Shown: positions 1 through 57,492 of the stretch, piece by piece
Layout of the letters: each line of letters starts with the position of its first letter
Position numbering within the stretch: position 1 is the stretch's first letter
From: Takakia lepidozioides
Lineage: Eukaryota > Plantae > Bryophyta
DNA length: 64,000 bases
Direction: 5' to 3'
NCBI GenBank assembly: GCA_030704615.1
Contig: CM060733.1
Coordinates: forward strand, 36,394,001 to 36,458,000
The notes under the pieces: model-generated
Database searches by the model: none
What the model saw: the letters and a program-made list of their open reading frames with translations, nothing else
Told to the model about the DNA's origin: nothing
Made by a program: the position numbers and the translations under genes

Positions 1-569
1 CCCCTCTCCTCTATCACCAAGAAGTCCTCCTCCGAATGATGTCCCTCAATTCCCCGTTTCTCCCTTTATCTTCCTATCCGCGGTTCTAACCGTTTCCCTC
101 ACTAACCGTCGTCTGTGAACTAACATGTTCCCTTCGCAGGTGTTGTTCCCCACAGTCGTTCCCTGTCCTACTCTTCGTTCCCTATGATCGTGACAGCTGT
201 GTCAAGCTGTGACTGGCTGTGTGAAACTGTGACGGGCTGTGACTGGCTGTGCGACTGTGTTTGGCTGTGTCGGACTGTGTTTGGCTGTGTGGCTGTGCCG
301 GGCTGTGTCGGTTGTGACGACTGTGACGGGCTGTGTTGGCTGTGTGGGCTGTGACGACTGTGACGGGCTGTGTTGGCTGTGTCGGCTGTGACGACTGTGA
401 CGGGCTGTGTTGGCTGTGTTGGCTGTGACGACTGTGTTGGGCTGTGTAACCCCCCTCTACAGTGCGCTGCTGTCACCCCTAAGGTTCCTCTTGGTCTCAG
501 TCTGTGCAAAAATTAAGGGTACCCTACAGATCCCGTATAAGTGTCTAAGTCCCCGACAGTCCTCTAACA
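1..569 (-). repeat. 3' LTR (window-truncated) of three-ORF Gypsy family
   Basis: Minus strand starts TGTTAGAGG at 569, directly after a PPT. Homologous to the LTRs at 17671-18550 and 52707-53676, and carries the CACAGC-rich minisatellite (~190-445). Confidence 0.9.
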
Positions 570-572
570 TTA

Positions 573-585
573 CCCCTTCCCCCTC
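573..585 (-). promoter_or_regulatory. Polypurine tract
   Basis: Minus strand reads TTTTT-GAGGGGGAAGGGG-TAA-TGTTAG, immediately upstream of the LTR. Confidence 0.85.
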
Positions 586-599
586 AAAAAGCCGTGTCC

Positions 600-2987
600 T
601 CACGGTTTACTGATTTCTACTAGCAAACCTTTGTGAGTGAGCACCTTCTTGACGTTGAGAGTTTCGTGGCGGACTGTGTGTACGAGCCCGAGGTCTGTCT
701 CTGGTTGACGGAGATGGTTGATCACTACCTGGATAAGTGAGGCCCTCTGGAGGCTGATATCGAGGTAACCTTTCCGGCATAGGAGACCCCCGTCGCTTCT
801 TCTCTGCCATCTGAATTGCATAGTCTTCTCCCATGTCAAAAGAATTCGGTGAAGAAACAGTTGTATCAGAATCCTCATCGTCTCTCAGGTGTTTTAATTT
901 TCGAACTTTTGTGTGTAATCATCTGGGGCATACAATGCTGTCCTACCATGTCTGGAAGTTTGTATTTTACAACATGGTGTAACCGCTGAACAGCAAAATT
1001 GGTGTAGACACTGAGCTCCTTGTCTGTCCAGGTGAGTGGGGTACCAATTACTGGTGCAGCGTGCAAGTATTTCCATGCCACATGTCCCTTATAGAAAATG
1101 TCATCAATGCCGAATTTCTGTGTTGACAAATGGTTGCAGGCCGCTTGAAACCATGAACGAATTTGAGAATCCTTTTGCATCATAACTTTTGGGTCATATA
1201 GGTACATATGAGGTGGCACCGAAGGTAATACCCAATGATCTCCACTGGAATAACTTTGAAAGCGTGTTTGCATCTTTTGTTGCTCAATGTGGTAACGTAC
1301 CAGAAAACAAGCAGCGTAATATAACCCGCACCCCATGACAATACTTGCTATCTCCTTGGTCTTGGTATAAATGAGTCCATGTACAACCTGGAAAGCAATC
1401 AATTCCCTCAACATGGTACCTGCCTCGTGCCAGTATTGTGCAAAGTGATGATCTTCAATATGTCGATTGTTCGGAAGAACTTTAGTCCTAGTTGCCACTG
1501 GCAGCCAAATACGCATGATTTGGTAGTAATGTGCGAATGACTGCGGAGGACTAAATTCTTTCCAAGCCAAATCCAACATGATGGGAATTTGGTTGAAGGG
1601 CATAATCATAGCCCTACTGTACTCCCTTGCAGCTGGAGTTTTAGGTGGGTTAAAAGCGGCATTGCCCCATACCTCCGGCTGTGGTGGCTGTGGTGTGGTT
1701 GTAGTAACCACAGGTTCAGCTATTGGTACAGTGACTTGTTGTGGTGGTGGTGGTACTGGCTCTTGTATCATTGGCATCTCCTGCCCCTCCTGTGAAGACT
1801 GAAAAGCCAAAGTTTTGGCTTGTAAATAAGAAGCCATTAGCTGTTCCTGAGGGATATAGACTCTTTGGTCGATGTTTGAAGTGAGTTCTTCCACTTGAGT
1901 CTGGAGTCCGTCTACATCCTCTTGTAACTCTGCTATCCTACTATAGACATTGTCTATAGTAGTTGTGGCAATGTTCTGCACCTGCAGCCTGAGCTCATTC
2001 ATCTCGCTTTGGGTGAGCTTCCGTGGTGCTTTGCCCTCTACTGGTCCTTGTGCTAACCAGACCTGCATAAGGCTGTTATCCACCAAGTTGCTTGTGGTTC
2101 CCCTGAGAGTTTGCTCCTCTCTTAGCTTGTACAATTTCAACTGCTGTTGTAAAGCCTCCATGCGCTTCGCCTGAGGTTCAACCAATTGCGCATAAGCAGC
2201 AAGTAGATTATTGGCTTCCTTCCAAGCCTTGTTATTGACCGCGATTTCATTTCTATTGGCCATGATGGTTTGTTGCAACTCCACGATGTGCTTTTCTTGA
2301 TCAGCTTCAATCTGCCTGTATTGCTTGAAAGTATCTTCATTGCGACAGATTGTTTTTTTCATATCGACAATGAGCTTCATTTGCTCAACATTCTCTTCTT
2401 CTGCCTTCGTACATTTTTCCGCTTGACTGTTTATTTCTTTTGTTGATTGGTCAAGCATAGTTGTAAATGTAGCACATTGTATTGCCATCCTGTTATGCAC
2501 TGTCTGCAACTCCGTATGTAGTGCATTCAGTTCTTGCAACTTGCTTCATGCTGCACCTGCATTTGGTATAGCTGTTGCTTATGTGCTTCTTGCAACTGGT
2601 CTTGCGCAAGGCCTGCCTCAATCAATTGTTGCTTGGCCAATTGCAAAGCCATTTCTGTATTTCCCAAGTCCTGCTTCATCTTGAGAGTGACCTCTTCATC
2701 GACCTTGTTTGCACATTCAGTGGCAAGTCGAGCCTCAAACTCCTTCCTGAGTTCCTCTTTCAAGGCTGTCAATTGGGTAATTGGAACATGGGATTTGACA
2801 TAAGTCCCCAACAAATTAAGTGTCCTGCCTATGAGCTCATCAGCATTGCCTGGTTGAGGGTCATCATGGTGAGGTTGCTGCTTTTCCTCCTGATCTTCAA
2901 CAGTGTGATGTCTCACTAACCATTCAGGCCATGTCCACCGGATTTTTCCTGAACTACTTCATCTATCACCGGTGCTACAGTGTCATG
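600..2987 (-). pseudogene. C-terminal half of the Gypsy 3' extra ORF (coiled-coil, env-position), frameshifted and cut by a DNA transposon
   Basis: ORFs 2527-2916 and 875-2539 match the C-terminal half of ORF 60147-63755, and 600-878 probably continues it. Homology stops at HDTV, where TGTCATG ends at 2987. Confidence 0.9.
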
Positions 2988-3001
2988 GAGGTTTACTATT
3001 T

Positions 3002-3060
3002 CATGAGCAGAAACCATGAGCCATGAGCCATGAGCCGCATGAGCCGCATGAGCGGTGAGC
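3002..3060 (+). repeat. Terminal CATGAGC/CCGCATGAG short tandem repeats
   Basis: catgagc-agaaac-catgagc-catgagc-catgagc-cg-catgagc-cg-catgagc-ggtgagc. Confidence 0.85.
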
Positions 3061-3834
3061 CGAAGTCTAAGATACGCGGATTTCATGAGCGGACTCCTCC
3101 AAATTTGGAAATGCGGCAGATTAAACAAGTATTAAAATAATAGTTTTTTATTTGACCTTGCCGTTTTTGGACGTTCCAGATCATGTAATGCGGCGAAGAT
3201 ATGTCGTCAGTAACAAGTCCGCTCATGGTTTTATAGATCCGCTCATGGAAATAAGTGACCGTGCAACGGGAAATCCAGTATACCACTGCAAAAGGACGTC
3301 GCATACTGGCCTGTATAGAGTATTCCGCGGTTTTACATGCCTTAACATTGGAATGAAGCTGACCCTTTTGCCGCGATTGAACCAATGGAGTCTGCACCAA
3401 TACAGTCTGCAGTACTTCACAATTCTGTCTTCTTCGGGTATTCGGCGGGAAAGGTTTGCAACTGAACTGGGAAATAGGGTGCCGCATTAGGGTTCGCACG
3501 TGCGAAATTTCGGAGCGGTTTGGTGTTGGCGAAGGCCGCCTCTGGGGGTACCTACGACGATACTTGGAAATTCGGCGCCGCATTTCCTTGTCGGAGGTCG
3601 AATGAGGAGAGCAAGTTTTCGGAAAGCAGAAAAACATGAACCCTCCAACATACAAAAATACATGCACGTGGAAACAAGTGAACGATATAGTAATATCTTA
3701 GTTCGAGCAAAACAGGTTACTGGTAGGCAAGACATATGTCGGACCTTTGTGTGGCCAGAGTCTGAGGTACTGGCAGCAGTACAGTTCTACTATCCGATGG
3801 GATACCGTAATTGTATGTGGACCGCAAGCCAAGC

Positions 3835-6800
3835 TCACTGGTCCCCTGGATCCATATTCAGAAGAGTGTGAACCTCCTGGGGGCTCAACCCTGGTGCATG
3901 TATGAAGTGATGAGTTGTGGAATTACAACGGAGTCTCTTTAGGTACACGTAGTACAAATGCTTGCAAGGGCAGTATGATGCCCCCTTGTTCGCCATGATC
4001 TGGAAGTCGGTGCAATTGCAGGTGGGTAATTCTGAAATGGTGATGGTGTACACCTCATTGCGAACAGCTGAGCCCGCCGTGGCCATCTGATACACACGCC
4101 CGAATCCTGGTGGGGGCACTTCTGTCGAGCTCTGGATTGTACAGTTCATCCGAAGTGCATTCCCCATCCTTGTCTCGTTCACTTTTGAGGGAGGTCGCCG
4201 CCTCTTCGGTTTCCCCCAACGGTGTGTAGGATGCTTAGAGCTGTCGTGTCCCATTGTTCTTGCTCTCACAGGGGTCGGTGGTGGAGGCTGTGGAAGCGGA
4301 AATGGTTGTCTGGGGACGTCAGTGCGCTGCACCATCCGAAATCCTGCGGCGGTAAGGGCGTCGGCCTCAACCTGACTCAGATCGCAGCCTGGTTCCACCG
4401 GCCACACCGGGGGAGCCTCTGGCATTGTTTGTATGCCGTACTTGGGCTTTCCATACACGCAAGTCATAATGTCGTGCCTGCAGAACCAGAACTGGGTGGT
4501 TGTCGCCTCCGCAAACTTTGCATGGACAAATCTTCCTGTAAAAGTAGGAGCAGGGACAGCCCCATCTGGATTCCTCCTTATCATCTCTAAACAACGTTGC
4601 CGTGTATCCACACGAATTGCGGAACACCTTCCTCGAAACGACGGCTTTGTGCGAGCAATTCTCCACTGTGAGGCAGACACAGTCGTCTCCACAATGGCTT
4701 GGCCATACTGCATAACAGCGGGCGGAATGTGGGGCAAGGGAGCGGTGGGAATTTGTTGCACGAAATCCCCGGTGAAGGCGACGGCGATCTGGAATTTCTT
4801 GGGCTTCCACTGCTGGAAGACACATTGTGCGGCAACATGACGGGACCTCGAGGTGCTGTCCGAATGTTCCTGTCGGATCTCCAGGAATCCTCTTCGCACC
4901 CGGGTTCCTCTTCAATCCTCCGCCTGACAGGGCGAGTCCGGACGTCCCCTCTAGGTGTTCACCTCTGCGGTGCAGAGGCGTCCCTTTGATCTTCTCTCGC
5001 AATGCTGTCGCCCATTTCACTGGATTCTTGGACCTCGAAGCTGTTCGTACCAACAATTCCTCCCTGTCCGGCCCAAAGCCCCATTGTTTGCCGCTCAGGA
5101 ACTTGTAGTACGTGGCTTGCTGCATGATTGCTCTGTCGATGTCCTCCGTTGTGGCCGTCACTACGTCCACCAGATGTGCGGCAGAAGACGCTCGCCAGGA
5201 GGAGTGGACCGATTCTGCCATATTCGTGTTCGGCATGTCCGTGTCGGAATCCAAGCACCGCTCCTAGAAGGACACAAACAACGGTGAGGGACCAATCGAA
5301 ATGTCCGTAACAGAAAGACAAATGAACGAAAATGACAGCAGCCTACCTCCCGCATGTACTGTCCGAACTGTCGATACCGAAAATGCCACCACCCCAACCA
5401 GCTGTGCAATGCTCCCAGATTGGTTGTCTCCACTGCACCTGACGTGTTCCACCAAGCCTCGATGATAGCAAACTTAACCTCCGCGTCATCAAATGTGGGT
5501 GCATCCTTCCACGCCGTACAAAGGACACGGTGTTCAGCCTGGAATGAGCTAGCAACAAATTTGGTAGTGTAGTGGGATAGACTCTGCATCCAATGGAATC
5601 CACAGGATCTCTCTTTCCCCTCCATTGGAACATTGGGGTCCTCACCGTACACACGCCGCACCGCTGCCCAGTTGGCCTGAGCGTTGTCTGCCATGAATCC
5701 CCTGAAATTGGGCTCTGGCAATCCCGCCCTTGCCATCTGCTCGTTTATGCCCTCCCACAGATGCATCTCGGACTGTGTGTCCTCCCCTTTCATCTCGCAG
5801 ATTGCAATCGTCATGAGCCTCTTGGAGTGATAGTCATAAACATGCGCACCCATAGTCACCCACTGATGGTTTGTAATTCGCTTGATGTGATCAAACATCA
5901 CCCAAGCATTCGACAAGTTTCCAGTTGTCATGCGAGTGACCAAGTCGACTCCACTCCCAGGCCCACACGTCGACATTTTGAAAATGTAACAACGATCGGA
6001 TTCGCTGCCTTGCCCTGGAAACCTGCTACCTTGGATGTAGTCATATCCAGTCATTCGTTTCACCTCCAGGATTGAGTACATGTCCGACCCCCTGCCGAAC
6101 TCCTGCTTGCAAGATACGATGTGATTCCGCACATTCGGACTACAAACGTGCGAGACGGACTCCAAGAGGTCACGCATCTCGTCTTCGGTCAAGGGCTCTC
6201 GGTCGGAACCATCTTCAGACATGATTTTGCCAAGAGCAATCTTGTGGGCTGCCTTCAGCTGAATCTGCTTTGGTCTGGCTCCGGGGCTCAATTTCACCTC
6301 CTCTTTTATGATGTCGTGTGCTTCCTGCACAGCCTCACGCATGTTGCCTCTCGCCAAGGGGTGGCAGTGGACCCCAACGTGTATGCAAGCTCTAGTCAAG
6401 TCCGGGAGCAAATGGATTACGTAATATTGCTTGGCTCTGCACATGGACATGCACGTCGGTGGTTCTTTGCAATGTGCACACTTGAAAGAACCCGCAGGAG
6501 CTTGGCTGGAGACAATGAATGGATGATGCGTTGTGCCAGTCCAATCCGTCTCGTTTCTCCGCCCTCCTTTGGAGAGAAAGTGGAAGCAGGTGGGATTGAG
6601 GCACCTCAGCTTCCCCGCACAGAGGACATATCGTACACGAACACCATCAGCAATTTTCGTGCTACTGGTCTTCGTCACACACCAGGGGTGTCCGTCATGC
6701 TTTCGATCCATGTCTGTTAACATCCCGGAGGCTTTTCTTTGACGAAGAAACAGGTGGAAACTCGAAGATGACATTGCCATCGACTTCGGGAGGCAGAAAA

Positions 6801-7234
6801 GTTACCTTTCTGACTGGGAATTTGGCATAGTCGAGAGCAGCCAGCTCGGAGCGAGAACCATCGAGGTGATGTTGTCGTAGGAGCTGCACAATGGACCGGG
6901 TTGGAGTTATGCTCGAGGGCACATGCGTAGCACCTACAGAGACGTCCATGCCGGATTTGAACGACCGTGTGGAGGACATGGGTACCTCAATGCAATCATC
7001 TTCCTCGTCGGAAATGTCGAATACGTCCACACGAGAAGCTATGGAGGGTCTTGACGGTCCAGGTCGGGAATGATTATCGTTGCATACCTCTCTGTTGGCA
7101 GTGGCCGCCTCTCGGTTTCCGGACTCCTTTGTGGATGGTGTGGGCAGCGACTGATTCGGAAAGGGAATGGGCATTCCCACAGCTCGGTACAGGATGGTGT
7201 CTGACGAGGGGGAACGTGCCATTCGATTCCGCAA
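3835..7234 (-). pseudogene. MULE transposase: GCM-like Zn domain + DDE core + SWIM finger (2 frameshifts, 1 intron)
   Basis: GCM-like W..CAGKLRCLNPTC..CAHC..C..GVHCHP. Catalytic WVMFD, FMAD, CGFH and TNMAESVH. SWIM CNCTDF..CKH. A phase-0 GT-AG intron (5346-5264) joins ORF 5161-6780 to ORF 4367-5254 in frame. Frameshifts near 6730 and 4870. Upstream ORFs to ~7800 may also belong. Confidence 0.85.
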
Positions 7235-7869
7235 CCTCCGTCGTTACCTAGCACGACAATGGTCTCGTCAACCTGTCCAGGAACATCCTTCCTTTCTTCT
7301 TCCAAATAAACTGTGCCCGGTTTGAGCTTGAATTTGGAACAAAGGTAAGTTTCAGTCACTCTGCAAAGTCCTCCCTCGTTGGGATCCAGGCTCTCCCAAG
7401 TTGCGGAGGACAGCAAACTATAGCGTAGGAATTCGGAGCCATCGAACACCGCACGGAGTTGGCAAGTGCGAGGTTCAGTATAGCGACAGACCAAGGCTCA
7501 CAGGCACCATCTAAGTGGATCTGCGGAGTCCATCGACAATTGGAAGTCGCACATTGAAGTGGAAAGTATTGTTTCAAGCTACATGCATGAAGGTGGGAGG
7601 TTTGATTCCATAGCCAGTGAGTAGGACAATGATGGCCGATTCGGCGACGAAATAACATCTCCTGACAGTTTCTCCTGAGGGTGGATCCAGCAGTATTCTC
7701 GGTGCAGACAGGAACGTTCGCACTGACAAGTGCCAGGACTGCTGGTTAAAACGGTCAGACAACCAAGTTGTGCTCATCAAGACTGGCCGCAATTGTGTTG
7801 TTTCGGAACAATGCAACCCATTGAGGTTCCAGATTTCCGTCCGAGTGATTCTGTTTCGATTGCTGGTGG

Positions 7870-9615
7870 ACGGAAATACGGCGCCGCATTTCCGTATTGC
7901 ATCTTGGTCATGCAACAGAGCGACGGAAATGCGGCACCGAGTTTCCGTCCGGGGAAACTTTATACTCTCCAGAACGGAAATGCGGTAACGCATTTCCATC
8001 CAGCAAGCACGGTATGTGAAGGTGGAACGGAAATGCGGTACCGCATTTCCGTTCTGATTGAGATTTATGAACAACGGGAACAGAAATGCGGCACCGCATT
8101 TTCGTCCGAGTCGCACTTTCGACATTCCAGAACGGGAATGCGGTGCCGCATTTCCATTTTGTATCTGATGCATGGAGCTGAGGGATAGAAATGCTGCAGC
8201 ACATTTCCGTCCTTAAAAGACATTCATACTCTCGAGAACGGAAATGCGGTACCGCATTTTCATTCAACAAGCACGGTATGTGAAGGTGGAACGGAAATGC
8301 CGGTACCGCATTTCCGTTTCTGATTGAGAATTATGAACAACCGGGAACAGAAATGCGGCACCGCATTTCCGTCAAAGTCGCACTTTTCGACATTCCATAA
8401 AGGAAATGCGGCGCCGCATTTCCATTTTGTATCTGATGCCTGGAGCCGAGTAAGATTCCGACAGCTTCATACAGCGCAATTCCGACCGGTTTGAGACATT
8501 CACACTATCCAGAACGGAAATGCGGCACCGCATTTCCGTTCTGACTGAAAATCGTGAACTATCTGAACTGAAATGCGGCACCGTATTTCCATCCGAGTCG
8601 CACCTACCATCATTCCAGAACGGAAATGCGGCACCGCATTTCCGTTCTGACTGAAATCGTGAACCATCGGAACTGAAATGCGGCAACGTATTCCATCCGA
8701 GTCGCACCTACCATCAGCCAGAACGGAAATGCGGCACCGCATTTCCGTTCTGACTGAAAATCGTGAAACCATCGGAACTGAAATGCGGTCAGCGCATTTC
8801 CATCCGAGTCGCACCTCCACACATTCAGAACGGAATGTATTAGATTTAAAAGGAAATGCGGCACCGCATTTCCGTTCTGATGAAATATCCTGAAACATCG
8901 GAATGAAATGCGGGGCGCGTACCGCATTTCCGTCGGAGTCCCACCATCCGACATTCCCAAACGGAAATGCGGCACCGCATTTCCGTTTGTATGTGAGCTG
9001 GAGCTGTGGAACGAAAATGCGGGAAGGCATTTCCGCCAGCGTCAGACGTTAATACTCTACAGAACGGAAATGCGGTACCGCATTTCCATTCTGACTGAAA
9101 TCGTGCGCAACGGGGTACAGAAATGCGGCACCGCATTTCCGTTCGAGTCGCACCTTCCGACATTCTCGAACGGAAATGCGGCGCCGCATTTCCGTTTTGT
9201 ATATTCGGCCTGGAGCTGTGCTACGGAAATGTGTTGCCGCATTTCCATCCATGTGAGACCTTCAACCTTTCCAGACCGGAAATGCGACACCGCATTTCTG
9301 TCCAGGTGAGACCTCTATACTTTCCCGAACGGATGTGGCACGACATTTCCATTCATCAACTAACGTATGTGAAGTGGGAACGGAAATGCGGCGCCGCATT
9401 TCCCTTCTGAATCTCATACTTGGAGCTGTGGGACGGAAATGCGGCACCGTATTTCCGTTCAACAACTAAGGTATGTGAAGGTGGAACGGAAATGCGGTGC
9501 CGCATTTTCTTCCAACAAGTACGGATGTGTAGCAGAGTGATCGTACTTAACGGAATGCGGCGCCGCATTCGCATTCTCGCCTCCAACTCATCAGACGCTG
9601 GGACGGAAATGCCTT
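7870..9615. repeat. Array of ~33 26-bp palindromes ACGGAAATGCGG(CA/TA/CG)CCGCATTTCCGT with ~27-bp variable linkers, 53-bp period
   Basis: Unit starts at 7870, 7923, 7974, 8027, 8080, 8132, 8185, 8238, 8291 ... 9550, 9603. Confidence 0.95.
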
Positions 9616-9980
9616 GAAATGTGACACGTGGAGCAACGGAATTGCTGCACATGTCGGCACTCTATCTGACTGAAGGGGCATGAGGCGGCGCGGCCTGACC
9701 GTTGGATAATGATGTTTGATTTTCGGACGGCGGGCGTACCCTCAACGATTCGAATTTCGTAATGACGCAAAGTCCACGAGGAGACACTTTCGTCCAACCT
9801 TTCGAACCCAAGTGGTGCATCACCGCCGTTTCATCTACTTTTGTCGTGTCTCTCAGTCACCCCTCTCGCGCCCTTTCCATCTGCACTCTTTGGCCCCTTT
9901 TCCCTCTCTCTGTTCTTCTTATGCTCAACTGAGAGGGGGGGGTAGTGCACCCAGACAGGAGACCTCGTCGCAAAGCTCCG

Positions 9981-10480
9981 NNNNNNNNNNNNNNNNNNNN
10001 NNNNNNNNNNNNNNNNNNNNNNNNNNNNNNNNNNNNNNNNNNNNNNNNNNNNNNNNNNNNNNNNNNNNNNNNNNNNNNNNNNNNNNNNNNNNNNNNNNNN
10101 NNNNNNNNNNNNNNNNNNNNNNNNNNNNNNNNNNNNNNNNNNNNNNNNNNNNNNNNNNNNNNNNNNNNNNNNNNNNNNNNNNNNNNNNNNNNNNNNNNNN
10201 NNNNNNNNNNNNNNNNNNNNNNNNNNNNNNNNNNNNNNNNNNNNNNNNNNNNNNNNNNNNNNNNNNNNNNNNNNNNNNNNNNNNNNNNNNNNNNNNNNNN
10301 NNNNNNNNNNNNNNNNNNNNNNNNNNNNNNNNNNNNNNNNNNNNNNNNNNNNNNNNNNNNNNNNNNNNNNNNNNNNNNNNNNNNNNNNNNNNNNNNNNNN
10401 NNNNNNNNNNNNNNNNNNNNNNNNNNNNNNNNNNNNNNNNNNNNNNNNNNNNNNNNNNNNNNNNNNNNNNNNNNNNNNNN
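9981..10480. other. Assembly gap (500 N)
   Basis: Run of exactly 500 N, probably a placeholder size. Confidence 1.
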
Positions 10481-10659
10481 GTCCCTTTCTTTTGACACCT
10501 GTCCTTGCACTTCATTCTCCTGCTTGTGTCGCAACCCCTGAACCTCCACGTGTCTAGTTTTTAAATAATTTCCGTTTCTTCTTCTTTCCTTCATGCCATT
10601 TTCCTGAAGTTTTTATATGTGTCCACTTGTCACTGATTCTATGGATCGTCTGTAACTGT

Positions 10660-10930
10660 AGTAGGCTGTGTTGAGCTGTGACAGGCTGTGTCATACTGTG
10701 TTACGCTGTGATAGCTGTGTTGCACTGTGGTCAGCTGTGATAGGCTGTGACACGCTGCGGAGGTTTGTGATAAGCTGTGTCACGTCGTGACGGGCTGTGA
10801 TAGGCTGTGTCACGCCGTGCTTGGCTTTATAGCTTTGTCAACGCCGTGATGGGCTGTGATGGCTGTGTCACGCCGGATGGGCTGTGATAGGCTGTGTTGC
10901 GCCTTGCTGGGCTGTGATAGGCTGTGTCAC
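10660..10930 (-). repeat. 30-bp CACAGC-rich tandem repeat at the end of pol (copy A)
   Basis: Repeated GGGCTGTGATAGGCTGTGTC units. Confidence 0.85.
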
Positions 10931-13900
10931 GTTTGTTTTGCCCCCTCGTCATATATACTGGGGCCTAGCGACAGGGTTCCATACTCCGTTCGTACAGTGG
11001 TGCAGCCCGTGACTGCTCTGCTGTTCAACATGCAATCATGCTGCAAGGGGTTTGTCATGGATGCCACTGTACCCTTTAACTTATTTGCATGACTCTTCCC
11101 AGCATTTCTTTTTGTTAATGGTTTGTACATGGCTGTGTTGTTATCATACATCTTTGTATGACATAAGGTCCTTTCATGGTGATTTTAAGCTTAGAAGCTT
11201 AATCTTTCCTTTCTTTTGCAAACCATAGAACCAAATCCCCGCCCCGTCTAAGTCTTTAACCTTGCCTTCATCAAACTGTTCCTTTTCTCTTCATCTGAAT
11301 TCTGGTCATATTATCAGCTGCATCAGCACGTATTTCTTCCACATGGTATAATTCATGTTTCCTGACTTTGATGAGTCTTGCAATCCATTTCTTTTTCCCC
11401 ACTCCGTTCTCATGGTAGGTAACAGGAATTCCACTGGAAGTAAGGCTTCCATACCTATAACTAATTGGAATGGGTGTATACTTTGTGGTGACTTTATACG
11501 AAGTCCTGTATGACCATAAAGCTGTCAGCAGCTTTGTATCCCATCCGTTCTGTTTGCATGACTATCTTAGCCAAGATAGTACATAGTATTTTGTTGGTAG
11601 CCTCTGCCTGTCCATTACCCTGTGGGTAATATGTTGTACTCTTTCTATGCCAATCATAAACTCTTTAGTCATAACTCAATGGTCTCATTCATGAAGTGAC
11701 TTCCTTGATCACTGATAAATTCTAAGGGACATCCAAATCGTGTAAGTATGTTCTCGTACAGGAACCTTTGCTGTGGACTTGGCTGTGTTGTCCCTCAAAG
11801 CTTAGCTTCCACCCACTTTGTAGTATAATCAGTGGCTGTAATTATGTACCTGTTTTGTGTATTCTTGATGGTGGATTAATTGGTCCAACAAAGTCTAGTC
11901 CCCATTTCTGAAATGGTTCGTAGGCATTGTAGGATGCAAGGCCATTCTTCCAGATCTCTGCAAAGGTCCTAGCCTCTGACATTCATCACACTTCTGACAA
12001 TACTCATGTACATCTTTGAACAAAGTAGGCCACCAGTATCCTTGCGAGTAGTATCTTTCTACTGGTAGTCTCTTCTCCAAAATGACCTCCAGCCACTCCT
12101 TTATGAACTTCCTCCAAGACTTTTATTTACTTCATGGTGGTACAAGCAAGCATTGTTTTAGTACCCCATCTGGTCCTAACTTATACATTCTGCTTCTTAC
12201 CATAGTAATAAGGTAAAGATTTGATAGCGATTCTCTTCCTCTGCTCCTTACCATAACTAGGTGGGCACTGACCATGAGCAAGATAGTATCTGATTGGCCA
12301 CTGCCAATCTAACCATTCATCTGCACTTCCTTGCACCTCCATTACACAGAAACTCGCATCAGGTAACTGATCGTCCACTCCTGTGGGCGGCCTCTCCTGT
12401 TGTTAGTCGTGACAAATGATCTGCCACAAGATGCCAAACGGCCAGGCTTGTAAATAACCTCGAACTCAAACTCATGAGATTATTAACCACGCTCGCTATC
12501 CTTCCACTTATCAAAGGTTTGTTCACCAGATATATCAGAGCCTGGTGATCACATAAAACATAAACTTTCTTCCCAATAGGTAATGCCTGAATTTCTTCAC
12601 TGCATAGATCATTGCTAATGCTTCTCTTTCCGTTGTGCCTATAGTTCCTCTCAGCACTGTTCATCAAACGGCTAGCATAGTACACAGGTGAATCTATATT
12701 CCCTGTAACATTCTGGGCTAACACCGCTCCAACGCTCTCCTGATGCATCGCAGTGAACATGAAATACTACATGCCAGTGAGGTTAATCAGCACAGGTGTA
12801 GTTGTTACTGACAGTGTAAGTTCCTCAAACGCCTGTTGACATTCAGCTGTCCATGCAAACACTGCATCTTTCTTCAGAAGCTTGCTCAATGGTGCTGCTA
12901 TTTGTGCATACCTTTTGACAAATCTTCTGTAATAACTGGTTTGCCCAAGGAATCTCCTTAACTCTTAACATTCACTGGTGGGTGGAGAGCTTTAATGGAC
13001 TCTGTCTTCCTGGGATCCACAAGGAGTCCCTCTTACACACAATGTGTCCCAGAAGCACCCCTGAGTTCACACAGAAAGTACACTTCTCTGGGTTCAAGCC
13101 CAGACCTCTCATCCTGCATCTGGCTAGGCATAACTCCAATTTATGCAAGTGCTCATTCTTAGAGCTGTACACACTGAATCATCAAAAACACCTGCATGAA
13201 ATCATCCAGATACTTGAAAAGATTCACTTATCACTCTCTGAAAGGTCGCTGGTGCATTACAAAGTCCAAAGGGCATGACTTTGTATGCATAAGCCCCCCA
13301 GTCTGTGTGATGAAAGCTGTTTTCCCTTGGTCTTCTTCTGCCACTTGCACTTGATTATAAACACTGAAGCCATCCATGAATGAGTACATCTCATGGCCTG
13401 CCACAGTGTCTAATACTGCTTCTGTGAATGGCAAAGGGAAAGGATCTTTCTTCGTACAAGCATTCAGCTTCTTATAGTTCACACATACTCTTAGTTTGCC
13501 ATTCTTCTTGGGAACTATAACAATGGGTGACAACCAAGTTGTATACTCTATTGGGTATATAAACTTAGCCTCAGCCAACTTCTTTATCTCTTCTCCAACC
13601 TTCTGTGCGTAGTTGGGATTCATTCTATACCTCGCCTGCTTGATTGGTACTGACCCTGGTTCCAGTTCAATTTATGCTGACAGACTTCAGGTGGTATCCC
13701 TTTTAGATCCTCATAGCTCCAAGCAAATACATCTCTGTATTTGATGAACAAGCTTTTGCTTCTTCGAAGAATTCCGGCTCCAAATCAGCTCCTACTTTCA
13801 CCATCCTCGGTTCCTCCTGAGTTCCCACATTTACTTCTCTCACCTGCTCATCAGCTGTGATTGTCCAACCAGTCACCACTTCATCCTGTAAGCTCACAGT

Positions 13901-14773
13901 GGCTGGTTCTTCTAGGATTTCTATTTCTCCTTCTCTTTCTTCATAGAAATGTGATGGGTAAATGCTGGTTTCTTCTTCAGTTGGTGTTGCTGTCACTACA
14001 CCACAGCAGATACCTCTCAAACAACTTAGGCTTTCCAGCCGCATCTCTGCAACCTGCTCCCACTCTGGGTGTGCAGCAAATAGGGTAGCTTCCTGCTCCT
14101 CATCCAGTCCTCCTCTCCAATCATACTCTCTGACTCCTCGAGGTCTTCTTGTAGCAGGTAATCTACTAGATTTCTTTGTGGTAATTTGTATCTCGTGTAT
14201 CCCATTATGCACGGTTAATAACTGAGAATTCCAGTCATGGAATACCCTGGCCTGTTTCAGCCACGGACGTCCCAATAATAAGGAGTAAGCTTCCATGACT
14301 TCATCCATTTTTAATACAGTTACGGTGATCATAAAGATCATTTTCTGTATCTGTATCTTAACTCCTCTTATTAATCCCAATGGCTGCACACTTCTTTGAT
14401 CTGCCATTGTTACTGTAAATGGGGCTGGTTTCATGTTACTTAGACCAAGCTTCTTCCTTAATTGGTCTGTCATGATATTTACTCCAGAACCACCATCTAT
14501 CAGTACATCAGTTAGTTCTGTGCTTCCAATTCTCAATTGGATTACTGGCATAGAATCATCAAAGTCCATGACTGGTTCTCGCCCTTCCGGCTTCATATTA
14601 TAACTGGTCACCTTGCTGTTCAGGTCTGTGTTTCGTGTCTCTTGGGCAATTCGATTGATTGCTTGATACAGCCTGTGCCTACAATAAGGTGCCACAGCTA
14701 ATAGCTGTCCAATGGTAATTTCCGCTTTGGTCTGACATATTACTGCAGCCAAAGTCTCTTCATTACTTTGCAT
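10930..14773 (-). pseudogene. pol (protease, RT, RNase H, integrase) of copy A with many indels
   Basis: LIDGGSGVNIM protease; WLSPIVIVPKKNGKLRVCVNY and SFMDGFS RT motifs; VYYASR RNase H; [13 protein letters not shown] integrase. Confidence 0.92.
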
Positions 14774-17061
14774 GTCTGCATCCTCTTTTTCCTTTCTTCC
14801 TCACTCCCCTCTTTTTCTCCATCCGAATCAGAGGAATCTGCCACAGGAATATCAGTACTCTTTTGCATTTCCCTTATAGTATCTGCCACTTCCTTGTGCA
14901 GTTCCTTCTCATCCTTCCAAGTCTCTTCATCTTCAGGCATATCATTGCCACTTCCAGTCTCATCTTCTTCCTCTTCTACTGGAGGTATTAGTTTGGCTTT
15001 ACTTCTTGTTACTATCATTGTACTTACTTCTGGTACAACACATGGCCTAACCATGTGAGCTGCCACCACTGGGCCCTCATTCACAGGAGCTCTCATCTCA
15101 TTCTGGTGTCTTATCCAGAATGAACAGGCTGCCTTGCGATGTCCTGGCTGATTACAATAGTAACATAGCTCTTCACCATTGGGTCCTCGCCCTTGGTCTG
15201 GTCTTGGATTATTTCTATAATCCTGATTCCCGGGCTGGTAATTCCCCCTTGGATTACCCTGATAGTTGCCTCTGGAATTTCCTTGGTGATTCCCTCTTGA
15301 ATTACCTCTCCCTTCCATGCCATTGTTATAACCACCAGACCTACCATAGTGGTCCTGATCATTGCTTCTTCTTGGCTGGGGCTGCACCTGATGCACCCTC
15401 ACTTGCCTAGGTTCTCTTGCAGCTGTCCTTCTGTTGTAGTAACAATTCTCAGTAGAATGGTTATCCATTTTACAGATAGTACAGTGTTTCTCCTTCATGT
15501 GGCATTCTGTAGTGGTATGGCCTTCATTCTGGCACTTTGCACACCATACACCCTTCCTCCAATGTGTTGCAGCCTCTGTGGCATACTTCTTCAAGATTTC
15601 TTCCAATCTTTTCTCATAGTTATCCCTCTTCAACTTTTCCTTTCTCTTACTCTTTCTTTTTAGTTCTTGCTCTTCTTCTTCATCTGACTCATCTTCAGAG
15701 TCCTCATCTTCCTTTTTCTCTCTCCTGAGCATTCCCAATTGCTCAATTCTGTTTGCAGTTTCAAATGCCTCCTCCACTGTATTATGGGGTAACATATCCA
15801 CTTTCTTCTGCAACTCTGGTCTTAGTCCACTCACAAACCAAGTCTTCTATAAACCGGGTGCTGGTACTGCAGCCAGCTTTTTCATCATCAATTCCATCTT
15901 CTCCATATACTCTTCAACAGTTTCATGCTTCTTCTGCTTCAGCTGTTGTAAACTTCCATACACTTCATCCTCAGTTTTACTTGTCCTGAACCTATTTCGA
16001 AATGCTGTATTCAAGCCATTCCAGGTTAGGAAATGATTATCAGGGAATCTTGCATACCATTCACTTGCTTTCTTGATAAGTGAACAAGGAAACAGTCTCA
16101 TCTTGGCATCATCGCCATTCTCATTGTTCACTATACACATGTGCTCAAATTGGCTAATGTGTACATCGGGATCCCCTTTTCCTGAATATATTGGAAAGGG
16201 TGGTTTTGCCCGTGTTGGTTGTAACGCCATCTGTGGCCCTACCTTCTGCCCACTGACAGGTGCTGGCACCCTTGCTGGTGCTGGTCCTTCTGGACCCGTT
16301 GTTTTTGTGGTGGATCTTCCACCAAGTGGTGGCCCTTGAGCACTCCCTGCTTCTGGCCCCACGATATTCACAGTATTCCCAGCTTCAGTTGCACTACTTC
16401 CCACACTCCCTGTCCCCCCAGAGCCAGATCCAGGCAGCCCGCCTGATCCCCCTGAGCCGACACCTTCGTTGGCCTGTGATCCAAGTGCTCCACTTGATCC
16501 AGGTCCAACGGGTTGGGATGTCCTGGTTGTAGTCTCAACCTCAGCTGTTGGGTCTACTTCTTCATATTCTTCCTCTTCTAATTTCTTCTCTCTGTTTTCA
16601 TCCTCCAAGTTCTGCCCTTGGGTTTCTTCTTCACTCATGTAACTCAACTGTAATGGTGTTGGAGAGTCTGAACTCTCCGTTGGCTCTGCCACATCCTCAT
16701 CTCCTTCTTCATCTTCTGCTTCAGAAACTGGAGTTCCTGTTTTTGGTGTTCCATGCCAACTCTTATCAAAGATTTCTGTCAAGTCTTTTATCCAAGGATG
16801 TACCTCAGATCTTTCACCTCGTGATTGATCTTCTTCCTGTACCAATTCCCTTAATCTTTCTTGCAAAGAAACAGAAGGAGTGGCATCCAACTCTAGTTCT
16901 TCCGGTATAGGTGATGCACTCTTTGATCTTAATGGTGTGAGAGGTCCAGATGATTCCCCTATGTCTATTCCTCTCTCCCAAAGATATGGATAATTAGCTT
17001 TCAGATAGCTTTCTCTTTTTGCTGAATATCTCTGTCGTCTAGCTTCTCTTTCATCACTCAT
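14740..17061 (-). pseudogene. gag of copy A (capsid domain + 3 CCHC knuckles), premature TAG at 15847
   Basis: YSGKGDPDVHISQF..LFPCSLIKKASEWY capsid motif; CAKCQNEGHTTTEC, CTICKMDNHSTENC and CYYCNQPGHRKAAC knuckles; CAG>TAG relative to copy C. Confidence 0.92.
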
Positions 17062-17082
17062 GTCCCATGTCTTTCATTTCTT

Positions 17083-17778
17083 TTAATGTGGCAATAACCA
17101 AAACTCTCTTCTGTAATATCTCTCGTATATGCCTGGGTTTCTTTCAAGCTTCAATGCACCCTTGGCTATACTTGAAGTCTCTGTTACCATATAACCATAT
17201 GGCAAACAAGTCTGAAAAGCTGTTCTTGGTGTGAGTTTGATCCACAAAATATCCTTTGGAATCCAATTCTTTACCAGTACAAGCTCTTCATGCATATGAG
17301 TATAAACATTCACCTTTCTTTCTTCCCAGCCTTCAAACTCTACTCGTTTAATGGATAGCAATGCTATCACATAAACCAATGTTGGTAACCAACGTGCTCT
17401 TCCTCTACAGGCTACCTGATAAATCTTTATCACTCCTTTCTCCAGACCCCATTCTGGATCAGCATCATGCACTCGTTTAAGAATATTTTCTTTACAACCG
17501 TCTGGCAATTCCAAGAACCTTTGAAAGAATTGTTTGGACAATCTTTCTTCCTTCGTTCCACAGGGAATTTGATTCACTTCAAATTCTTTAATGGTCCATC
17601 CACCATGATCCCACCAGATGCCTGTCACATCTGGTTGTTCATGTCCCAGGTCCCCAGTATGGTCGCCAAATGTCGCGCGGCTTTTACTCACCCATCCCTT
17701 CGCTATCCGAGGCGGAAACTCCAAGATAGAAGAGTTGGAAATCTCTAAGTACTCAACCCGCGCAGAACAATCAGTCAT
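17083..17778 (-). CDS. ORF0, 231-aa unknown protein starting inside the 5' LTR and crossing the PBS
   Basis: Intact 696-nt ORF ending 21 nt before the gag ATG. The same ORF in copy C has one CGA>TGA stop. Confidence 0.6.
   Translation of the reverse strand: MTDCSARVEYLEISNSSILEFPPRIAKGWVSKSRATFGDHTGDLGHEQPDVTGIWWDHGGWTIKEFEVNQIPCGTKEERLSKQFFQRFLELPDGCKENILKRVHDADPEWGLEKGVIKIYQVACRGRARWLPTLVYVIALLSIKRVEFEGWEERKVNVYTHMHEELVLVKNWIPKDILWIKLTPRTAFQTCLPYGYMVTETSSIAKGALKLERNPGIYERYYRREFWLLPH
17650..17668 (-). promoter_or_regulatory. Primer binding site, tRNA-Arg-like
   Basis: TGGCGACCATACTGGGGAC, 2 nt after the LTR end ..GCGACA. Resembles the complement of plant tRNA-Arg 3' ends. Confidence 0.75.
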
Positions 17779-18550
17779 GACCTACAGCTAGTGTATCATG
17801 GGGGTGTTTCCTATTTGTTTCCCTTTCCGCATTCATCTTAGCTACCTTACCATTGATAATTAAGTATCAGTTTGCTTCATCGATCTATCGGTTTCCTTCA
17901 CTCATCCATTCAATCCACAGCTTCACTCAGATCTCTCTACACAGTGTGATTGTATCGTATAAGTATCAGATTATGATTTATCAGGTATCAGGCCGAAGCC
18001 ATTATGTCTCTAATCTGCTCTACAATATCACTACATCTTTGCATATAACAAGCATCTACTAATCCTCCTTTCTCGTGCTCTCCGACCTCCGCTCCCGTAT
18101 GACTCCGAAATCCTCCTTCCCCGAATAATAATCCCCCCATCATTCCCCGTTCTTCCCTTTATCTTCCTATCCGTAGTTCTAACCGTTTCCCTCACTAACC
18201 GTCGCTTGTGAACTAACATGTTCCCCACAGTCGTTCCCTGTCCTGCTCTCCGTTCCCTATGATCGTGACCGCTGTGTCAAGCTGTGACTGGCTGTGTGAG
18301 CTGTGTGGGCTGTGTCGACTGTGTTTGGCTGTGTCAGGCTGTGACTGGCTGTGTCGGCTGTGTCGGGCTGTGATTGGCTGTGTGGGCTGTGTGGGCTGTG
18401 TTGGCTGTGTCGGCTGTGTCGACTGTGTAACCCCCCTCTACAGTGCGTTGCTGTCACCCCTAAGGCTCCTATTGGTCTCAGTCTGTGCAAAAATTAAGGG
18501 TACCCTACAGATCCCATATAAGTGTCTAAGTCCCCTACAGTCCTCTAACA
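17671..18550 (-). repeat. 5' LTR of copy A (880 bp)
   Basis: TGTTAGAGG...GCGCGACA termini, followed by the PBS. Confidence 0.92.
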
Positions 18551-18782
18551 CTCCCGGAGGGAAATGCATACTTGCGTACAGCTCCTTGGTTGGATTCGGA
18601 AGGTGCATGCAGAGTGCTTTGGATATGCTGTTGGGACTCCACAATGGGATGAAGTAATGGCATTTCAGTTCAACTCTCCCGAAGTGCCCCAACAACCTTT
18701 CAGTTGGGAGTGTGGGTTTTACGTGATGTCTTTCATTGAAGGGTATTACGACTGGCTGAAAGGCGATAGACAGAAACCTTAA
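18551..18782 (+). pseudogene. 3' end of a Ulp1/C48 SUMO-protease-like gene, cut by the LTR insertion
   Basis: VPQQPFSWECGFYVMSFIE matches the Ulp1 catalytic Q..C motif (PQQx4-5CGxYV). Confidence 0.7.
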
Positions 18783-19663
18783 GAGAGAGGACAAGCCTTT
18801 ACACCAAGGTGGTTTAATTTCAGGTTTCCGTTACTGCAACGATTGCAGTGTGTAAAGCATATCCGTCGTGGTTTGGACGATGTAGAAAAATTGCTCCTTT
18901 GAGGAAATAAATATATACATTCAATGTTGTTTCAATTCACATTTTGAATGTATGTAATATTTTCTGAGATGAAGGCCTACATGCACTCTTACTGTTCCCA
19001 CCTATGCAAGTTTGTCAAAAGAAGTCGTGCAATGGCCGAACAATATAGTCCAGTAGACAACCACCCCACGTCCTCACTTGGGCAGACTACTTGGTTCTAC
19101 TATTAACTACTGTTAGCAGACTACAACAGTCTCCGTCTGTTTGACCAGTTTACCGCGCAGTCTGCTGGCTGCTTAGCAGTTTGCCGGCTAGTCTGTTGCA
19201 TGCTGAGAAGTCTGTCGGGTAGTGTGCTGGCCGCTCATCAGTCTGCTCGGCAGAGTGTGTGGCACTTTGATACATAGTTTATATGTATGTGCAGTTGGGC
19301 TCCGTGTCTGGGCGAGTACACTCCGTGGGAGCAGTCCGATGGACACTGCAGAAGACCACACAGTCAGTCCATACTGTATATCTGCTGGACCACCCAGTCT
19401 GTTAGCCGAAAACCATCAGCAGACTTGGCAGTGTTATTCTGCACTTGTGCAGTCTGCTTAATAGTCTGTTTGGCCATTTTCGTGGTCTGTTGAGCAGAAT
19501 GCTCAGTCTTCCGCAACTTGACGGTGGGGCGCTCTGAGCTCTGATGGAATGCACTTCCAGGGTGTTAATGATGCAAACATGTATGCACTCTCAAGTGTGG
19601 ACCTTTTATTTCTCTGCATGGAATATGCTGGCATAACATTGTTTTGCTGTGTGAGTATGCTGT

Positions 19664-22600
19664 CTACTTGGGTCTCGCCCAACGGTCTGAAACCTTAACA
19701 ATTCTAGAGTATATTTTCGTTGCAGGTGTTGGGGCATACACCCTATTGCGCATTCTCCGCAAGACTTTGGGTCGGGTTTTCCATGCTTCGACAAAATCCC
19801 TCTTTTTTTTCAGAGACAAATTATTATTGTCGTCAACAGGTTTTGCTGCACGAGGATGTAGCATCCCAGCAGCACTTTTGGCCAGGATATCAATAAGTTG
19901 TCCTCTACAGATTCGAAGGCACGACAACACATGTGTCTCAAGGTACTTGTCATCACCCACAATACGAAGTATATCTGACCATTCTTCGGCCATACTCAGT
20001 GGGACGTAGACGGGTTCCTCGAGGGATGCAAAGTCACAATCCTCCACAGGTCTGTCCATCACGATAGTTGTTTTATCCAACATCAGATTATGCAATCCTC
20101 CATGTATGGTTCCGAGCGTCGTGCCACATGCACGCACTATCCTGCAAGTCGGGATGAAGCAACTTCAGCACTTTCACTTGGTGTTTGCACAAATTGCCTT
20201 TCATTACCCATGGGCAAGTGCAAGAAGCCCAATCCAATCTAGGGTTGTAAACAATGTAGGTTGTGTCTGGGTGATTGCTGCTTAGCACATACGCTGGTTG
20301 TCCTTCCACCAAGGGTAGAGTCACATTGCTCGCTGGAATGTCCCTGGCCGTTAGCACAGAGCTAGATATGTATTTTTCCTGCTTGTCATTGCGTATGAAC
20401 CCATGCGTCTTCAAATGAATTGCGTACCAGTAGTGTGTGAGCACACGGTCCGTGAGTTCCCATATTAGCCAATCGACTCTTCAACCAGTCATTTTGCCTT
20501 TCCCCATCCTCAGTCTAGCCTTCAAGTTTCCAAGGTATGCCTCAATGCTAGCATTTGTGTCTTGACTGGCATGTGGAACATGACGAGCATCAGTACACCA
20601 CATTGCTATTTTAGGAGACCATTCCTTGTCGATGTACTTTAAAAATTCCCGGGCATTCCGATATTTCTTTCTCATGTCCCTGATTGTTTTGGCAACCCAT
20701 AGAAGCACTTTTTTGGGATCGCTTGGTCCACCTCTACAGTACATGAGGTCTCCCATATCCTTTAACACGTTTGCTGCTGTGACGGGATCTTTGGTCTTCT
20801 GACATGATTGCTCTACCCATGCCTTGCGGACATGCCAAAGGCACAGGAAAATGAGGACTCCTTTGAAAGCAACCCTGCACATAACACATCCACATGAGGC
20901 ACTTCAGAAGGAACTCCGGCTGGTGGACACCATCCGAGTGCTGGAGACCTCCAACAGACTTCACACCAACCTCTAAATGGATTTGGTGGTAAGACACTGC
21001 CTGCGAGTGTGGCGGGCTGACTTCCCCTCCCAAGTCTGCTAGCAGACCCATGAAGCGTGGCAGCGGACTCGGCCCGTTCAGTGTACCAGCGGACTCACCC
21101 ACGCAAGTCTAGCAGCGGAGTTGGTCCGTTGACTGCAAGCGGACTCGCCCACACGAGTGTGCAGCGGAGTCTCCGAGTCGAGTTTGCCAGCGGAATCGCG
21201 CATGCGAGTCTACCAGGGTACCGGCGCAGGCGTGTCTGCCAGCCGAGTAGCCCAAAGCAGACTCCACACCAACCCCTACACGAACTTGGTCGCAAGACAC
21301 TGCCTACGGGTCTGGCTGGCCGACTTCCCCTCCCAAGTCTGCCAGCAGATCCATGAAGGGTGCCAGCAGACTCGCAAGTCTGCCAGCGACTTGGTCGGGC
21401 GAGTCGGGCTTGCCCACGCGACTTGGTCCGAGTCTTGTCTGCCAGCAGACTCGTGCATGCGAGTCTCTCAGGGAACTGTCGCACGCGACTCTGCCAAAGC
21501 ACACTATGATGACACTTACATGCCAGAGGACTTCGACAGTGGGTGTTTGTTGAGGTATGGAAGACTCACCTTATAGCGTTGATTTCAACATCTGCATCAT
21601 CAACAATGAAGGCATTGGGTCGCCAGGTCGGCATATCTGCATGGAGTTGGTCACGCAAGGCTGTCATCACGGCACCATGTCTGTTATCCTATTCCTGGCG
21701 GATATGATGTCGCAACTGGTATACCGTTCAGCCACTCGTCGAAAACCATCAACGTGTACAATGGGAACTGTTCAGATGCACTATGTCACTATGTCAGTTG
21801 GTTCCAATGTGCAACATCCTACGAACAATTGATTTGCAGAAATGGTAAGAGGATGAATCGTACCTTGTGGTGATTTTTCCCGAAGGTTGCATCGCATGCA
21901 ATGATACGCGCATGTCCCAATTGAAGCATTCTCTGCTTCTACCACTCAGTTTGAATGCCAATAGAGAATGTCAAATCTCCATCGTAATGCTTGAAGGTTG
22001 GCGCCAATGTTTCTTCTCAATAGAAGAAGACTGATGCGGGGTTCAGGTCTTTCCACATGCGGACGCTGTCGGCATCGTTGGCATGCTTTATGAACGTCTA
22101 CCACGCCCGTTTCTAAGCCAGGTTGCGGATATCTTGCTCGAGGAGGAAATCATCACGTGTCCATGCATCTCCCAAACATGTGTTGTTCATGACACGCTCC
22201 TTGTGTTCCATCATGATTTGTGCGACCGTGAGGCCTCGGCACAAACACTCAACGACCCAGACTTTCAATTCCTCGCTATTGCGGGGTGCGTAGGCTGCCC
22301 GTGTGTTCCTGAACCCTGCGGTCTTGCCATGGGAGGGTTTCCCTAGGGCATCGACGTGCTCCATGTTGTTGTAGTATGTGAGGACACAAATGTCCAGGGC
22401 AAGATAAGATTGTTGCACTTTGAAACAACAAAGGCACCCGCGCTTGTACGACTCTCCGTAGTCCGACTTCTTCCTTCTTGGGCCTTTATGCGGGTGTTTA
22501 GTGCCAGCACCCACATCCGGACCTCCACGCTTTTGTTTTGGATCCTCGACAGTTGCATTGACCGTGCGCTTGTCATCGGGTCCGTAGCAGCATTGATACC

Positions 22601-54264: not shown

Positions 54265-54285
54265 AAGAAATGAAAGACATGGGAC

Positions 54286-57200: not shown

Positions 57201-57457
57201 AGACCTCGAGGAGTCAGAGAGTATGACTGGAGAGGAGGACTGGATGAGGAGCAGGAAGCTACCCTATTTGCTGCACACCCAGAATGGGAGCAGGTTGCGG
57301 AGATGCGGCTGGAAAGCCTAAGTTGTTTAAGAGGTATCTGCTGTGGTGTAGTGTCGGCAACACCAATTGAAGAGGAAACCAGCAGTTACCCACCACATTT
57401 CTATGAAGAAAAGGAGGGAGAGATAGAAATCCTAGAAGAACCAGCCACTGTGAGCTT
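54286..57457 (+). pseudogene. gag-protease of copy C (1-nt frameshift near 56620)
   Basis: 787-aa ORF with capsid domain and 3 CCHC knuckles, then ORF 56610-57512 with LIDGGSGVNIM. Confidence 0.92.
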
Positions 57458-57492
57458 TCATCACAGACTGGGGGGCTTATGCATACAAAGTC

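Follow-up and report, generated by a model that had tools for sequence, protein, structure and literature searches.

A tandem palindrome array in a Mutator-like transposon of a seed-free plant and its probable ParB-type reader

The transposon and its internal array

The window, by which we mean the whole stretch of 64,000 nucleotides that was analysed, is repeat-rich, plant-like DNA in which several Gypsy copies accompany a spliced gene resembling Vta1 and a single N gap. One Gypsy family, marked by (GCTGTG)-type tandem blocks, is represented by three copies or more, at 215-18700, 34900-41800 and 52800-64000, and has a long additional ORF behind pol (60147-63755). Of these copies, the one at 215-18700 is the host of the transposon studied here, which is nested in it such that Gypsy homology ends at 2987 and resumes at 10485, past the gap. 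Elsewhere the plus strand holds the spliced host gene (23800-28168), Vta1/LIP5-like by eye in its C-terminal exon. The minus strand holds a second decayed element that by eye is Mutator-like (SWIM-type; 19600-23100, with short repeats at 21060-21391) and served as a CpG control, an ORF that carries a DINGLL motif and by eye resembles HAD/NIF (43691-44545), and a proline-rich ORF whose C-terminal part is transposase-like (47336-48400). The transposon and its surroundings comprise the following features.

2988..3065, plus strand: visible transposon end, 3' of the transposase, where Gypsy homology stops; seven clustered TGAGC, resembling the ends of L001, L002, L028, L032 and L033
3468..3589, no strand assigned: two isolated degenerate array palindromes (at 3468 and 3564), 3' of the transposase; a half-site stands at 3107
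3835..5263, minus strand: transposase exon 2, encoding the third acidic residue (motif MAESVH) and, at the C-terminus, a SWIM-like finger
5264..5346, minus strand: putative intron, GT-AG, 83 nt, placed from the sequence and a break in homology
5347..7442, minus strand: transposase exon 1; the start at 7442 is a candidate, homology running from 7380
5347..6075, minus strand: Mutator/IS256-type RNase H catalytic core, with D297, D365 and the CxxH residues C393/H396
6346..6723, minus strand: WRKY-GCM1-fold zinc domain, from conserved Cys/His ligands and structure matches
7870..9628, no strand assigned: internal tandem palindrome array of 32 (plus one or two decayed) palindromes of 26 bp, core CG-N4-CG, modal period 53 bp, five linker families
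9629..9980, no strand assigned: element DNA past the array, without an inverted copy of the visible end; contigs continue past 9973
9981..10480, no strand assigned: assembly gap, which must conceal about 1.7 kb of host Gypsy (unless deleted) and the other transposon half

The transposase gene, on the minus strand, extends from about 7440 to 3835, is split by a single putative intron of 83 nt, and has 91 homologues at 30-51% identity. The top structural match to an AlphaFold model of exon 1 is the IS256/Mutator transposase ISCth4 (Foldseek E 3e-4, Z 11.2), and across the homologues D365 and H396 are invariant and D297 and C393 nearly so. At the C-terminus a SWIM profile matches with E 0.035 and 14.1 bits, under the 19.6 cutoff, and the ligand motif is visible. 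A preliminary description of this DNA had assigned a GCM-type domain to the transposase, and the assignment stands: C54, C60, C65, C104, C110, C114, H138 and H140 (480-aa query numbering) are invariant and C101 nearly so, a ligand set that is GCM-like and two-zinc, and structure comparison recovers 1odh (Foldseek prob 0.91, E 0.05), WRKY domains (Z 6.2 and 5.8) and GCM (Z 4.3). The zinc domain is unmatched in Pfam; searches of Pfam, NCBIfam and PDB sequences left both it and the ParB domain of the relatives unnamed, and the two take their names from structure prediction. With a DDE catalytic domain and a WRKY-GCM1 zinc domain in the modelled structures, the element is a Mutator-type DNA transposon.

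Relative to other copies in contigs from sequencing runs, the gene carries frameshifts near 4772 and 4945 in exon 2 and near 6733, 7206 and 7378 in exon 1, and because its transposase is frameshifted the window copy is predicted to be non-autonomous. The element family is high-copy in these contigs, and was met in no sequencing run recorded as RNA. A second array or an inverted end was looked for in 9600-9980 and not found; since the contigs continue past 9973 and no inverted partner precedes the gap, the array is internal to the element.

The array lies about 430 bp upstream of the transposase. A unit parse divides 7870-9574 into 32 units, each a 26-bp palindrome plus a linker of about 27 bp; one of them, at 8460, is heavily decayed, and further decayed palindromes stand near ~7815, 9603 and 9636, which bears out the array of about 33 copies first described. 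The consensus is ACGGAAATGCGG-NN-CCGCATTTCCGT, making this a GGAAATGCGG-type array, and the two central bases vary among CA, CG, TA and TG. The period is 53 bp in 18 of 32 cases, 51 bp in three, 52 bp in three and 54 bp in two, with six outliers of 50-73 bp; the modal value amounts to 5.05 helical turns. Between 10500 and 64000 there is a single match scoring at least 22, which is at chance level, and no comparable array occurs in these other 53 kb of the window.

Read by eye, the linkers follow the order ?-E-ABCDE-ABCDE-BC-BC-BC-BCDE-BCDE-E-A-D-A-a-d, that is, a 5-unit higher-order repeat (ABCDE twice), then a run of BC dimers and then shuffled units. Ungapped linker identity is 0.54-0.82 within a family versus 0.14-0.51 between families, with a shuffle null of about 0.25, so that the five families and the layout given in the preliminary description are upheld. 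As mutual inversions the families reach a best identity of 0.41 versus a null of 0.26, a weak signal. The expectation that palindromes evolve more slowly than linkers also holds: column conservation is 96% in the palindrome versus 59% in the rest of the unit, and in 16 same-family unit pairs mismatches amount to 8.5% of palindromes versus 15.2% of linkers (Fisher p=0.004, the pairs being non-independent). Departures from the palindrome at 8584, 9287 and 9343 are absent from most other copies in the run contigs. The array is real, and its palindromes are under constraint.

A conserved palindromic repeat with variable linkers of constant length is also found in CRISPR arrays, and a CRISPR-like or transcribed multi-hairpin RNA, processed to unit-length small RNAs, had been considered. 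The units do fold strongly (z -5.5 to -7.7), as is expected of any palindrome array. Such an RNA nevertheless appears highly improbable. The linkers recur in five families and, searched for external targets, matched no phage or plasmid; viral and prokaryotic collections do not contain the exact palindrome, and there is no Rfam match. Further, the 2-nt centre is too short for a loop, adjacent units cross-pair in three of four folds, and the single putative RNA run covers no part of the array, which is weak evidence. Unlike CRISPR loci, the region shows no cas gene and belongs to a eukaryotic transposon.

Arrays, ends and accessory genes of related elements

The relatives are long loci fetched for homologous transposases, which are about 40% identical to that of the window. 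Palindrome arrays lie upstream of the transposase in eight of nine such loci (L001, L002, L003, L004, L030, L031, L032 and L033), in agreement with the expectation that the array is found 5' of this transposase. Their motifs are as follows.

L001: CTTGCGC-NN-GCGCAAG, period 182 bp
L002: TGTGCGC-NN-GCGCACA, spacing 102-232 bp
L003 and L033: CTCTCGG-NN-CCGAGA, periods ~137 (L003) and 129 (L033)
L004 and L030: GCTCG-N4-CGAGC, irregular spacing
L032: GTTTCGG-NN-CCGAAAC, period 45-48 bp
L031: TTTCG-N4-AGAAAG, slightly asymmetric

The geometry shared by these arrays is CG-N4-CG, and a near-diagonal cross-search indicates that the motif is nearly private to each family. Two CG-N4-CG palindromes also lie between the two genes of L037, and in the relatives sites occur in the introns of the accessory gene and on both flanks of the transposase, much like the window strays at 3468 and 3564. 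There is no clear array between the genes at the GCM-transposase copy of L034 and at L035, though the ParB gene is present in both; the 25 metagenome loci L005-L029, mostly short or strongly CpG-depleted (o/e 0.03-0.47 where measured), have no recognisable arrays and are uninformative. At L034:17536-18320 five TTTCG-GACC-CGAAA palindromes with a period of ~192 stand next to a second ParB/methyltransferase copy, which is 86% identical to the array-less copy facing the GCM transposase. The CG-N4-CG sites at L030:2500-7560 are interspersed with long repeats able to form hairpins, whose arms reach 66 bp and whose periods are 255 and 455.

Two further claims of the preliminary description, that each palindrome is a pair of inverted GCM cores and that helical phasing is under selection, did not survive this comparison. 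The animal GCM site is ATGCGGGT (PMC2172107). This full site, ATGCGGG(C/T), has no copy on either strand, the 6-mer ATGCGG alone being present, and ATGCGG is not common to the relatives, whose half-sites read TTGCGC, GTGCGC, TCTCGG, GCTCGT and TTTCGG and whose zinc domains are 37-45% identical to that of the window. The relatives' periods of 45-48, 129, ~137, 182 and ~192 bp, or irregular spacing, correspond to 4.3-4.6, 12.3, 12.7-13.2 or 17.3 helical turns, or to none; with values such as 4.3, 12.3, 13.0 and 17.3 turns, phasing is not a property of the family. As flanks and periods are family-specific and the core CG-N4-CG alone is shared, neither the GCM site nor 5-turn phasing is conserved. 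In each of the seven arrays scored, conservation is higher in the palindrome than in the remainder of the unit (0.90-1.00 versus 0.50-0.91). Copy number and period would then be set by tandem duplication in a family-specific manner, with selection acting on the palindrome and not on its phase.

The same tandem turnover could be read as that of a neutral minisatellite, a palindrome unit amplified by slippage or unequal exchange, carried by a high-copy transposon and with its arms homogenised by gene conversion. Turnover of tandem repeats typically leaves higher-order repeats and shuffled units, the period is not conserved, and unrelated tandem repeats are common in the related loci. We consider this quite unlikely, given that the CG-N4-CG geometry recurs at the same position in nine families that otherwise have no common repeat sequence, that the sites of L002, L004 and L030 are conserved despite irregular spacing and a non-repetitive context, and that two CpGs per site persist in a genome whose retroelements show a CpG o/e of 0.18-0.5. 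The array is tied to the transposon and is no free satellite: it lies upstream of homologous transposases in the eight loci and in run contigs is no more abundant than the transposase, contig depth being a poor measure. As a sign of protection, CpG retention failed its control (o/e 0.77 versus 0.72 in the unrelated Mutator element of the window).

A cluster of the end motif TGAGC/GAGCGG is common to the window, L001, L002, L028, L032 and L033. In L002 and L032 the motifs of one end are inverted relative to those of the other, and L002 shows a duplication of 8-9 bp. The L002 locus contains two near-identical element copies (285-11905 and 15421 onward), of which the first is without about 1.5 kb holding the methyltransferase exon, and the 8-9 bp duplication borders one copy on its right and the following copy on its left, with an F-box gene (12709-13938) in between. 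Inside the L002 element, between array and ParB-like gene, lies a protein-kinase-like gene (3602-5098, minus strand; Pkinase E 4e-8).

A head-to-head ParB-like exon is present in ten related loci (L002, L003, L004, L014, L030, L032, L033, L034, L035 and L037), two of which are NCBI genome assemblies: L035 (GCA_022343405.2) and L037 (GCA_014529385.2). The accessory gene to which it belongs points away from the transposase, with the array between them; it is spliced and has a DGNHR motif in the conserved exon, whose family comprises 1,072 clusters at 50% identity. The fold model, which covers the N-terminal ParB/Srx part of the accessory protein, reaches a pLDDT of 95.7 in AlphaFold. Foldseek relates it to Noc/ParB/Srx (prob 0.94-1.0, E ~0.01), VIA-align ranks KorB (Z 8.1) and PadC (Z 7.6) among a best eight rows that are all of the ParB/Srx fold, and an Atlas feature search returned a ParB_N cluster among its results. 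Domains of the accessory gene were searched exon by exon, as separate exons, and the later ones match N6_N4_Mtase (E 4e-7 in L002), pieces homologous to this domain recurring in L032-L034. Amino-methyltransferases usually have (D/N/S)PP(Y/F/W) as motif IV; here it reads DIPD/DIPE/DVPF, and because it is non-canonical, catalysis by this methyltransferase-like domain is doubtful. The VANC domains DUF1985 and DUF287 had no Pfam match in the scanned accessory exons.

Scans of the whole readable window with tblastn and HMMs found no accessory gene, and the 8-10 kb upstream of the transposase in L001 and L031, both of which have arrays, yielded no ParB exon. Since the window transposase is a long branch, about 40% identical to its relatives, we infer the cargo of the window element from them. 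The gap covers the place where they carry the ParB/methyltransferase-like gene, and the accessory gene of the window copy, if present, would lie inside it.

Candidate readers of the palindromes

Mutator transposases bind element ends. Here a conserved end motif is combined with a variable internal motif, which points to a second reader, and the end motif TGAGC/GAGCGG is likelier than the palindrome to be the site of the transposase. The preliminary description had instead cast the transposase as binder, its dimers contacting the palindromes through the WRKY/GCM-type zinc domain so as to autoregulate, counter silencing or load the transpososome. The proximity of array and transposase speaks for this reading, as does the sharing of GCGG by half-site and end motif in the window family; moreover, WRKY-GCM1 domains tolerate diverse sites and transposases can self-regulate (PMC1702500), and the AtMu1 transposase alone binds and hypomethylates cognate copies (10.64898/2026.08.24.746577). 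Nonetheless we judge it rather unlikely. AtMu1 binds at TIRs (10.64898/2026.08.24.746577), families with unlike internal palindromes have the end motif in common, no full GCM site is present, and in the relatives it is the ParB-type accessory gene that faces the array. The transposase sisters L004 and L032 (87% catalytic and 74% zinc-domain identity) have different main palindromes. The palindrome sequence clearly followed neither the transposase tree nor the ParB-N tree: the ParB-N sisters L034b and L030 have different palindromes too, and L003 and L033, sisters in both trees, have a common motif, which can be counted for the transposase as well.

Similar arrays also adjoin transposases without a GCM domain, which again argues against the zinc domain as reader. 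Next to L033 and L034 are elements with a DUF7869 DDE-type protein, which we take to resemble Sola transposases. At L036:1051-12319 and L033:14078-21917 the DUF7869 transposon has a head-to-head gene with an INGQHS motif (ParB box-II-like), and CG-N3-CG palindromes lie between the DUF7869 gene and this partner (17 copies in L036, seven in L033). The INGQHS gene family, with 152 homologues, is colinear with the ParB-like family, weakly so (hhalign prob 8%, E 0.004); PDB and Pfam gave no support for it as ParB, the likeness being at motif level. With so weak an alignment between the INGQHS gene and the ParB-like family, the control is no more than suggestive.

Palindromes with a CG core are common among plant factor sites, and sites that lie between divergent genes and in introns could form a bidirectional enhancer for the two genes, read by a host transcription factor. 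The flanking bases are, however, private to each family, even among families from one sample, so that a co-evolving, element-encoded reader fits better than a fixed host factor, and we regard the latter as very unlikely.

The array thus probably represents parS-like sites for the element's own ParB-type accessory protein, the predicted binder, whose gene would lie outside the readable window. A dimer of this protein would load on the palindromes, as ParB does on parS, and might spread along the element; it may keep the element open or marked, acting in anti-silencing or on the promoters of the two divergent genes. For the zinc domain of the transposase, the main targets would be the terminal TGAGC/GAGCGG repeats. 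It likewise seems probable that a large Mutator-like DNA transposon family of seed-free plants has a self-recognition module, to which the array contributes the cis-acting half.

Relation to known systems and significance

WRKY-GCM1 domains on Mutator transposases are already known (PMC1702500), and the Mutator-like elements (MULEs, relatives of IS256) covered in that study share with our element the WRKY-GCM1 fold, DDE with CxxH, and a putative SWIM finger. The TIR-like ends of MULEs, with short repeated motifs, and their target duplications of 8-11 bp have likely counterparts in the inverted end motifs of the relatives L002 and L032 and in the 8-9 bp duplication of L002, one end alone being visible in the window. 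MULEs differ in the two-zinc GCM-like ligand pattern found here, which PMC1702500 reports only for the animal GCM1 family, and in the internal palindrome array and the ParB-type cargo, the latter seen in relatives.

The array probably belongs to a land-plant variant of an accessory module proposed in 2025 for red and brown algae. In the consulted parts of the two sources, PAG3 of the Bostrychia Plavaka element is a ParB-like gene adjoining tandem inverted-repeat arrays (10.1101/2025.02.11.637652), and the Ectocarpus element Sola1-1_Ec32 encodes a fusion of ParB and an N4C/N6A methyltransferase on the strand opposite the transposase (PMC12477816); there, both put forward self-binding and self-modification as proposals without tests. 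Compared by description, these and our elements are DNA transposons with a ParB-like accessory gene (here in ten relatives), and the inverted-repeat tandem arrays of PAG3 have their counterpart in the window and eight relatives. The differences lie in the land-plant host, in the Mutator-type transposase with its WRKY/GCM zinc domain and putative SWIM finger, in the 2OG-oxygenase of PAG3 as against the methyltransferase-like domain of the land-plant relatives, and in the family-specific CG-N4-CG site code, which those parts of the algal accounts do not describe. In our literature search, which covered subscription papers thinly, no land-plant description of a ParB-type transposon module was found.

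VANDALs are, according to the consulted part of the Bostrychia study, the sole transposons reported to bind and alter their own DNA methylation via an accessory protein (10.1101/2025.02.11.637652). The analogy with VANDAL/VANC of Arabidopsis drawn in the preliminary description is apt: these too are Mutator-superfamily elements with an accessory gene (here in relatives), and their family-specific motifs have multiplied as tandem repeats, both in introns and upstream of the transposase (PMC5735166). VANC, however, has DUF1985/DUF287 and reads non-palindromic 9-mers, whereas here there are palindromes and, in relatives, a ParB fold; and it is for VANC that hypomethylation has been shown. With bacterial ParB/parS, Noc/NBS and KorB/OB the present system shares the ParB/Srx N-terminal fold, the box-II-like DGNHR motif and clustered palindromic sites of 14-26 bp near the gene. 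It differs from them in that no ParA is seen and in that its accessory gene is eukaryotic and spliced, the encoded protein having a large helical insertion and ending in a methyltransferase-like part.

As the window copy is broken and has no visible accessory gene, it contributes comparative evidence and not a new system. What the land-plant family adds is matched sets of candidate proteins and sites, with at least nine different CG-N4-CG palindromes, plus CG-N3-CG next to a second transposase type, and such sets make a ParB clamp or a bacterial-type DNA mark on plant chromatin directly testable. At its furthest, the proposal would be that seed-free land plants harbor a widespread ParB/parS-like system encoded by transposons, every family pairing a CG-N4-CG palindrome of its own with its own ParB-fold reader, the latter acting as a nucleotide-dependent sliding clamp on chromatin and writing or mimicking an N4C/N6A mark that blocks host 5mC silencing; in this full form we hold it to be doubtful. 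If true, the family palindromes and their ParB-fold readers would constitute a natural library of orthogonal reader/site pairs.
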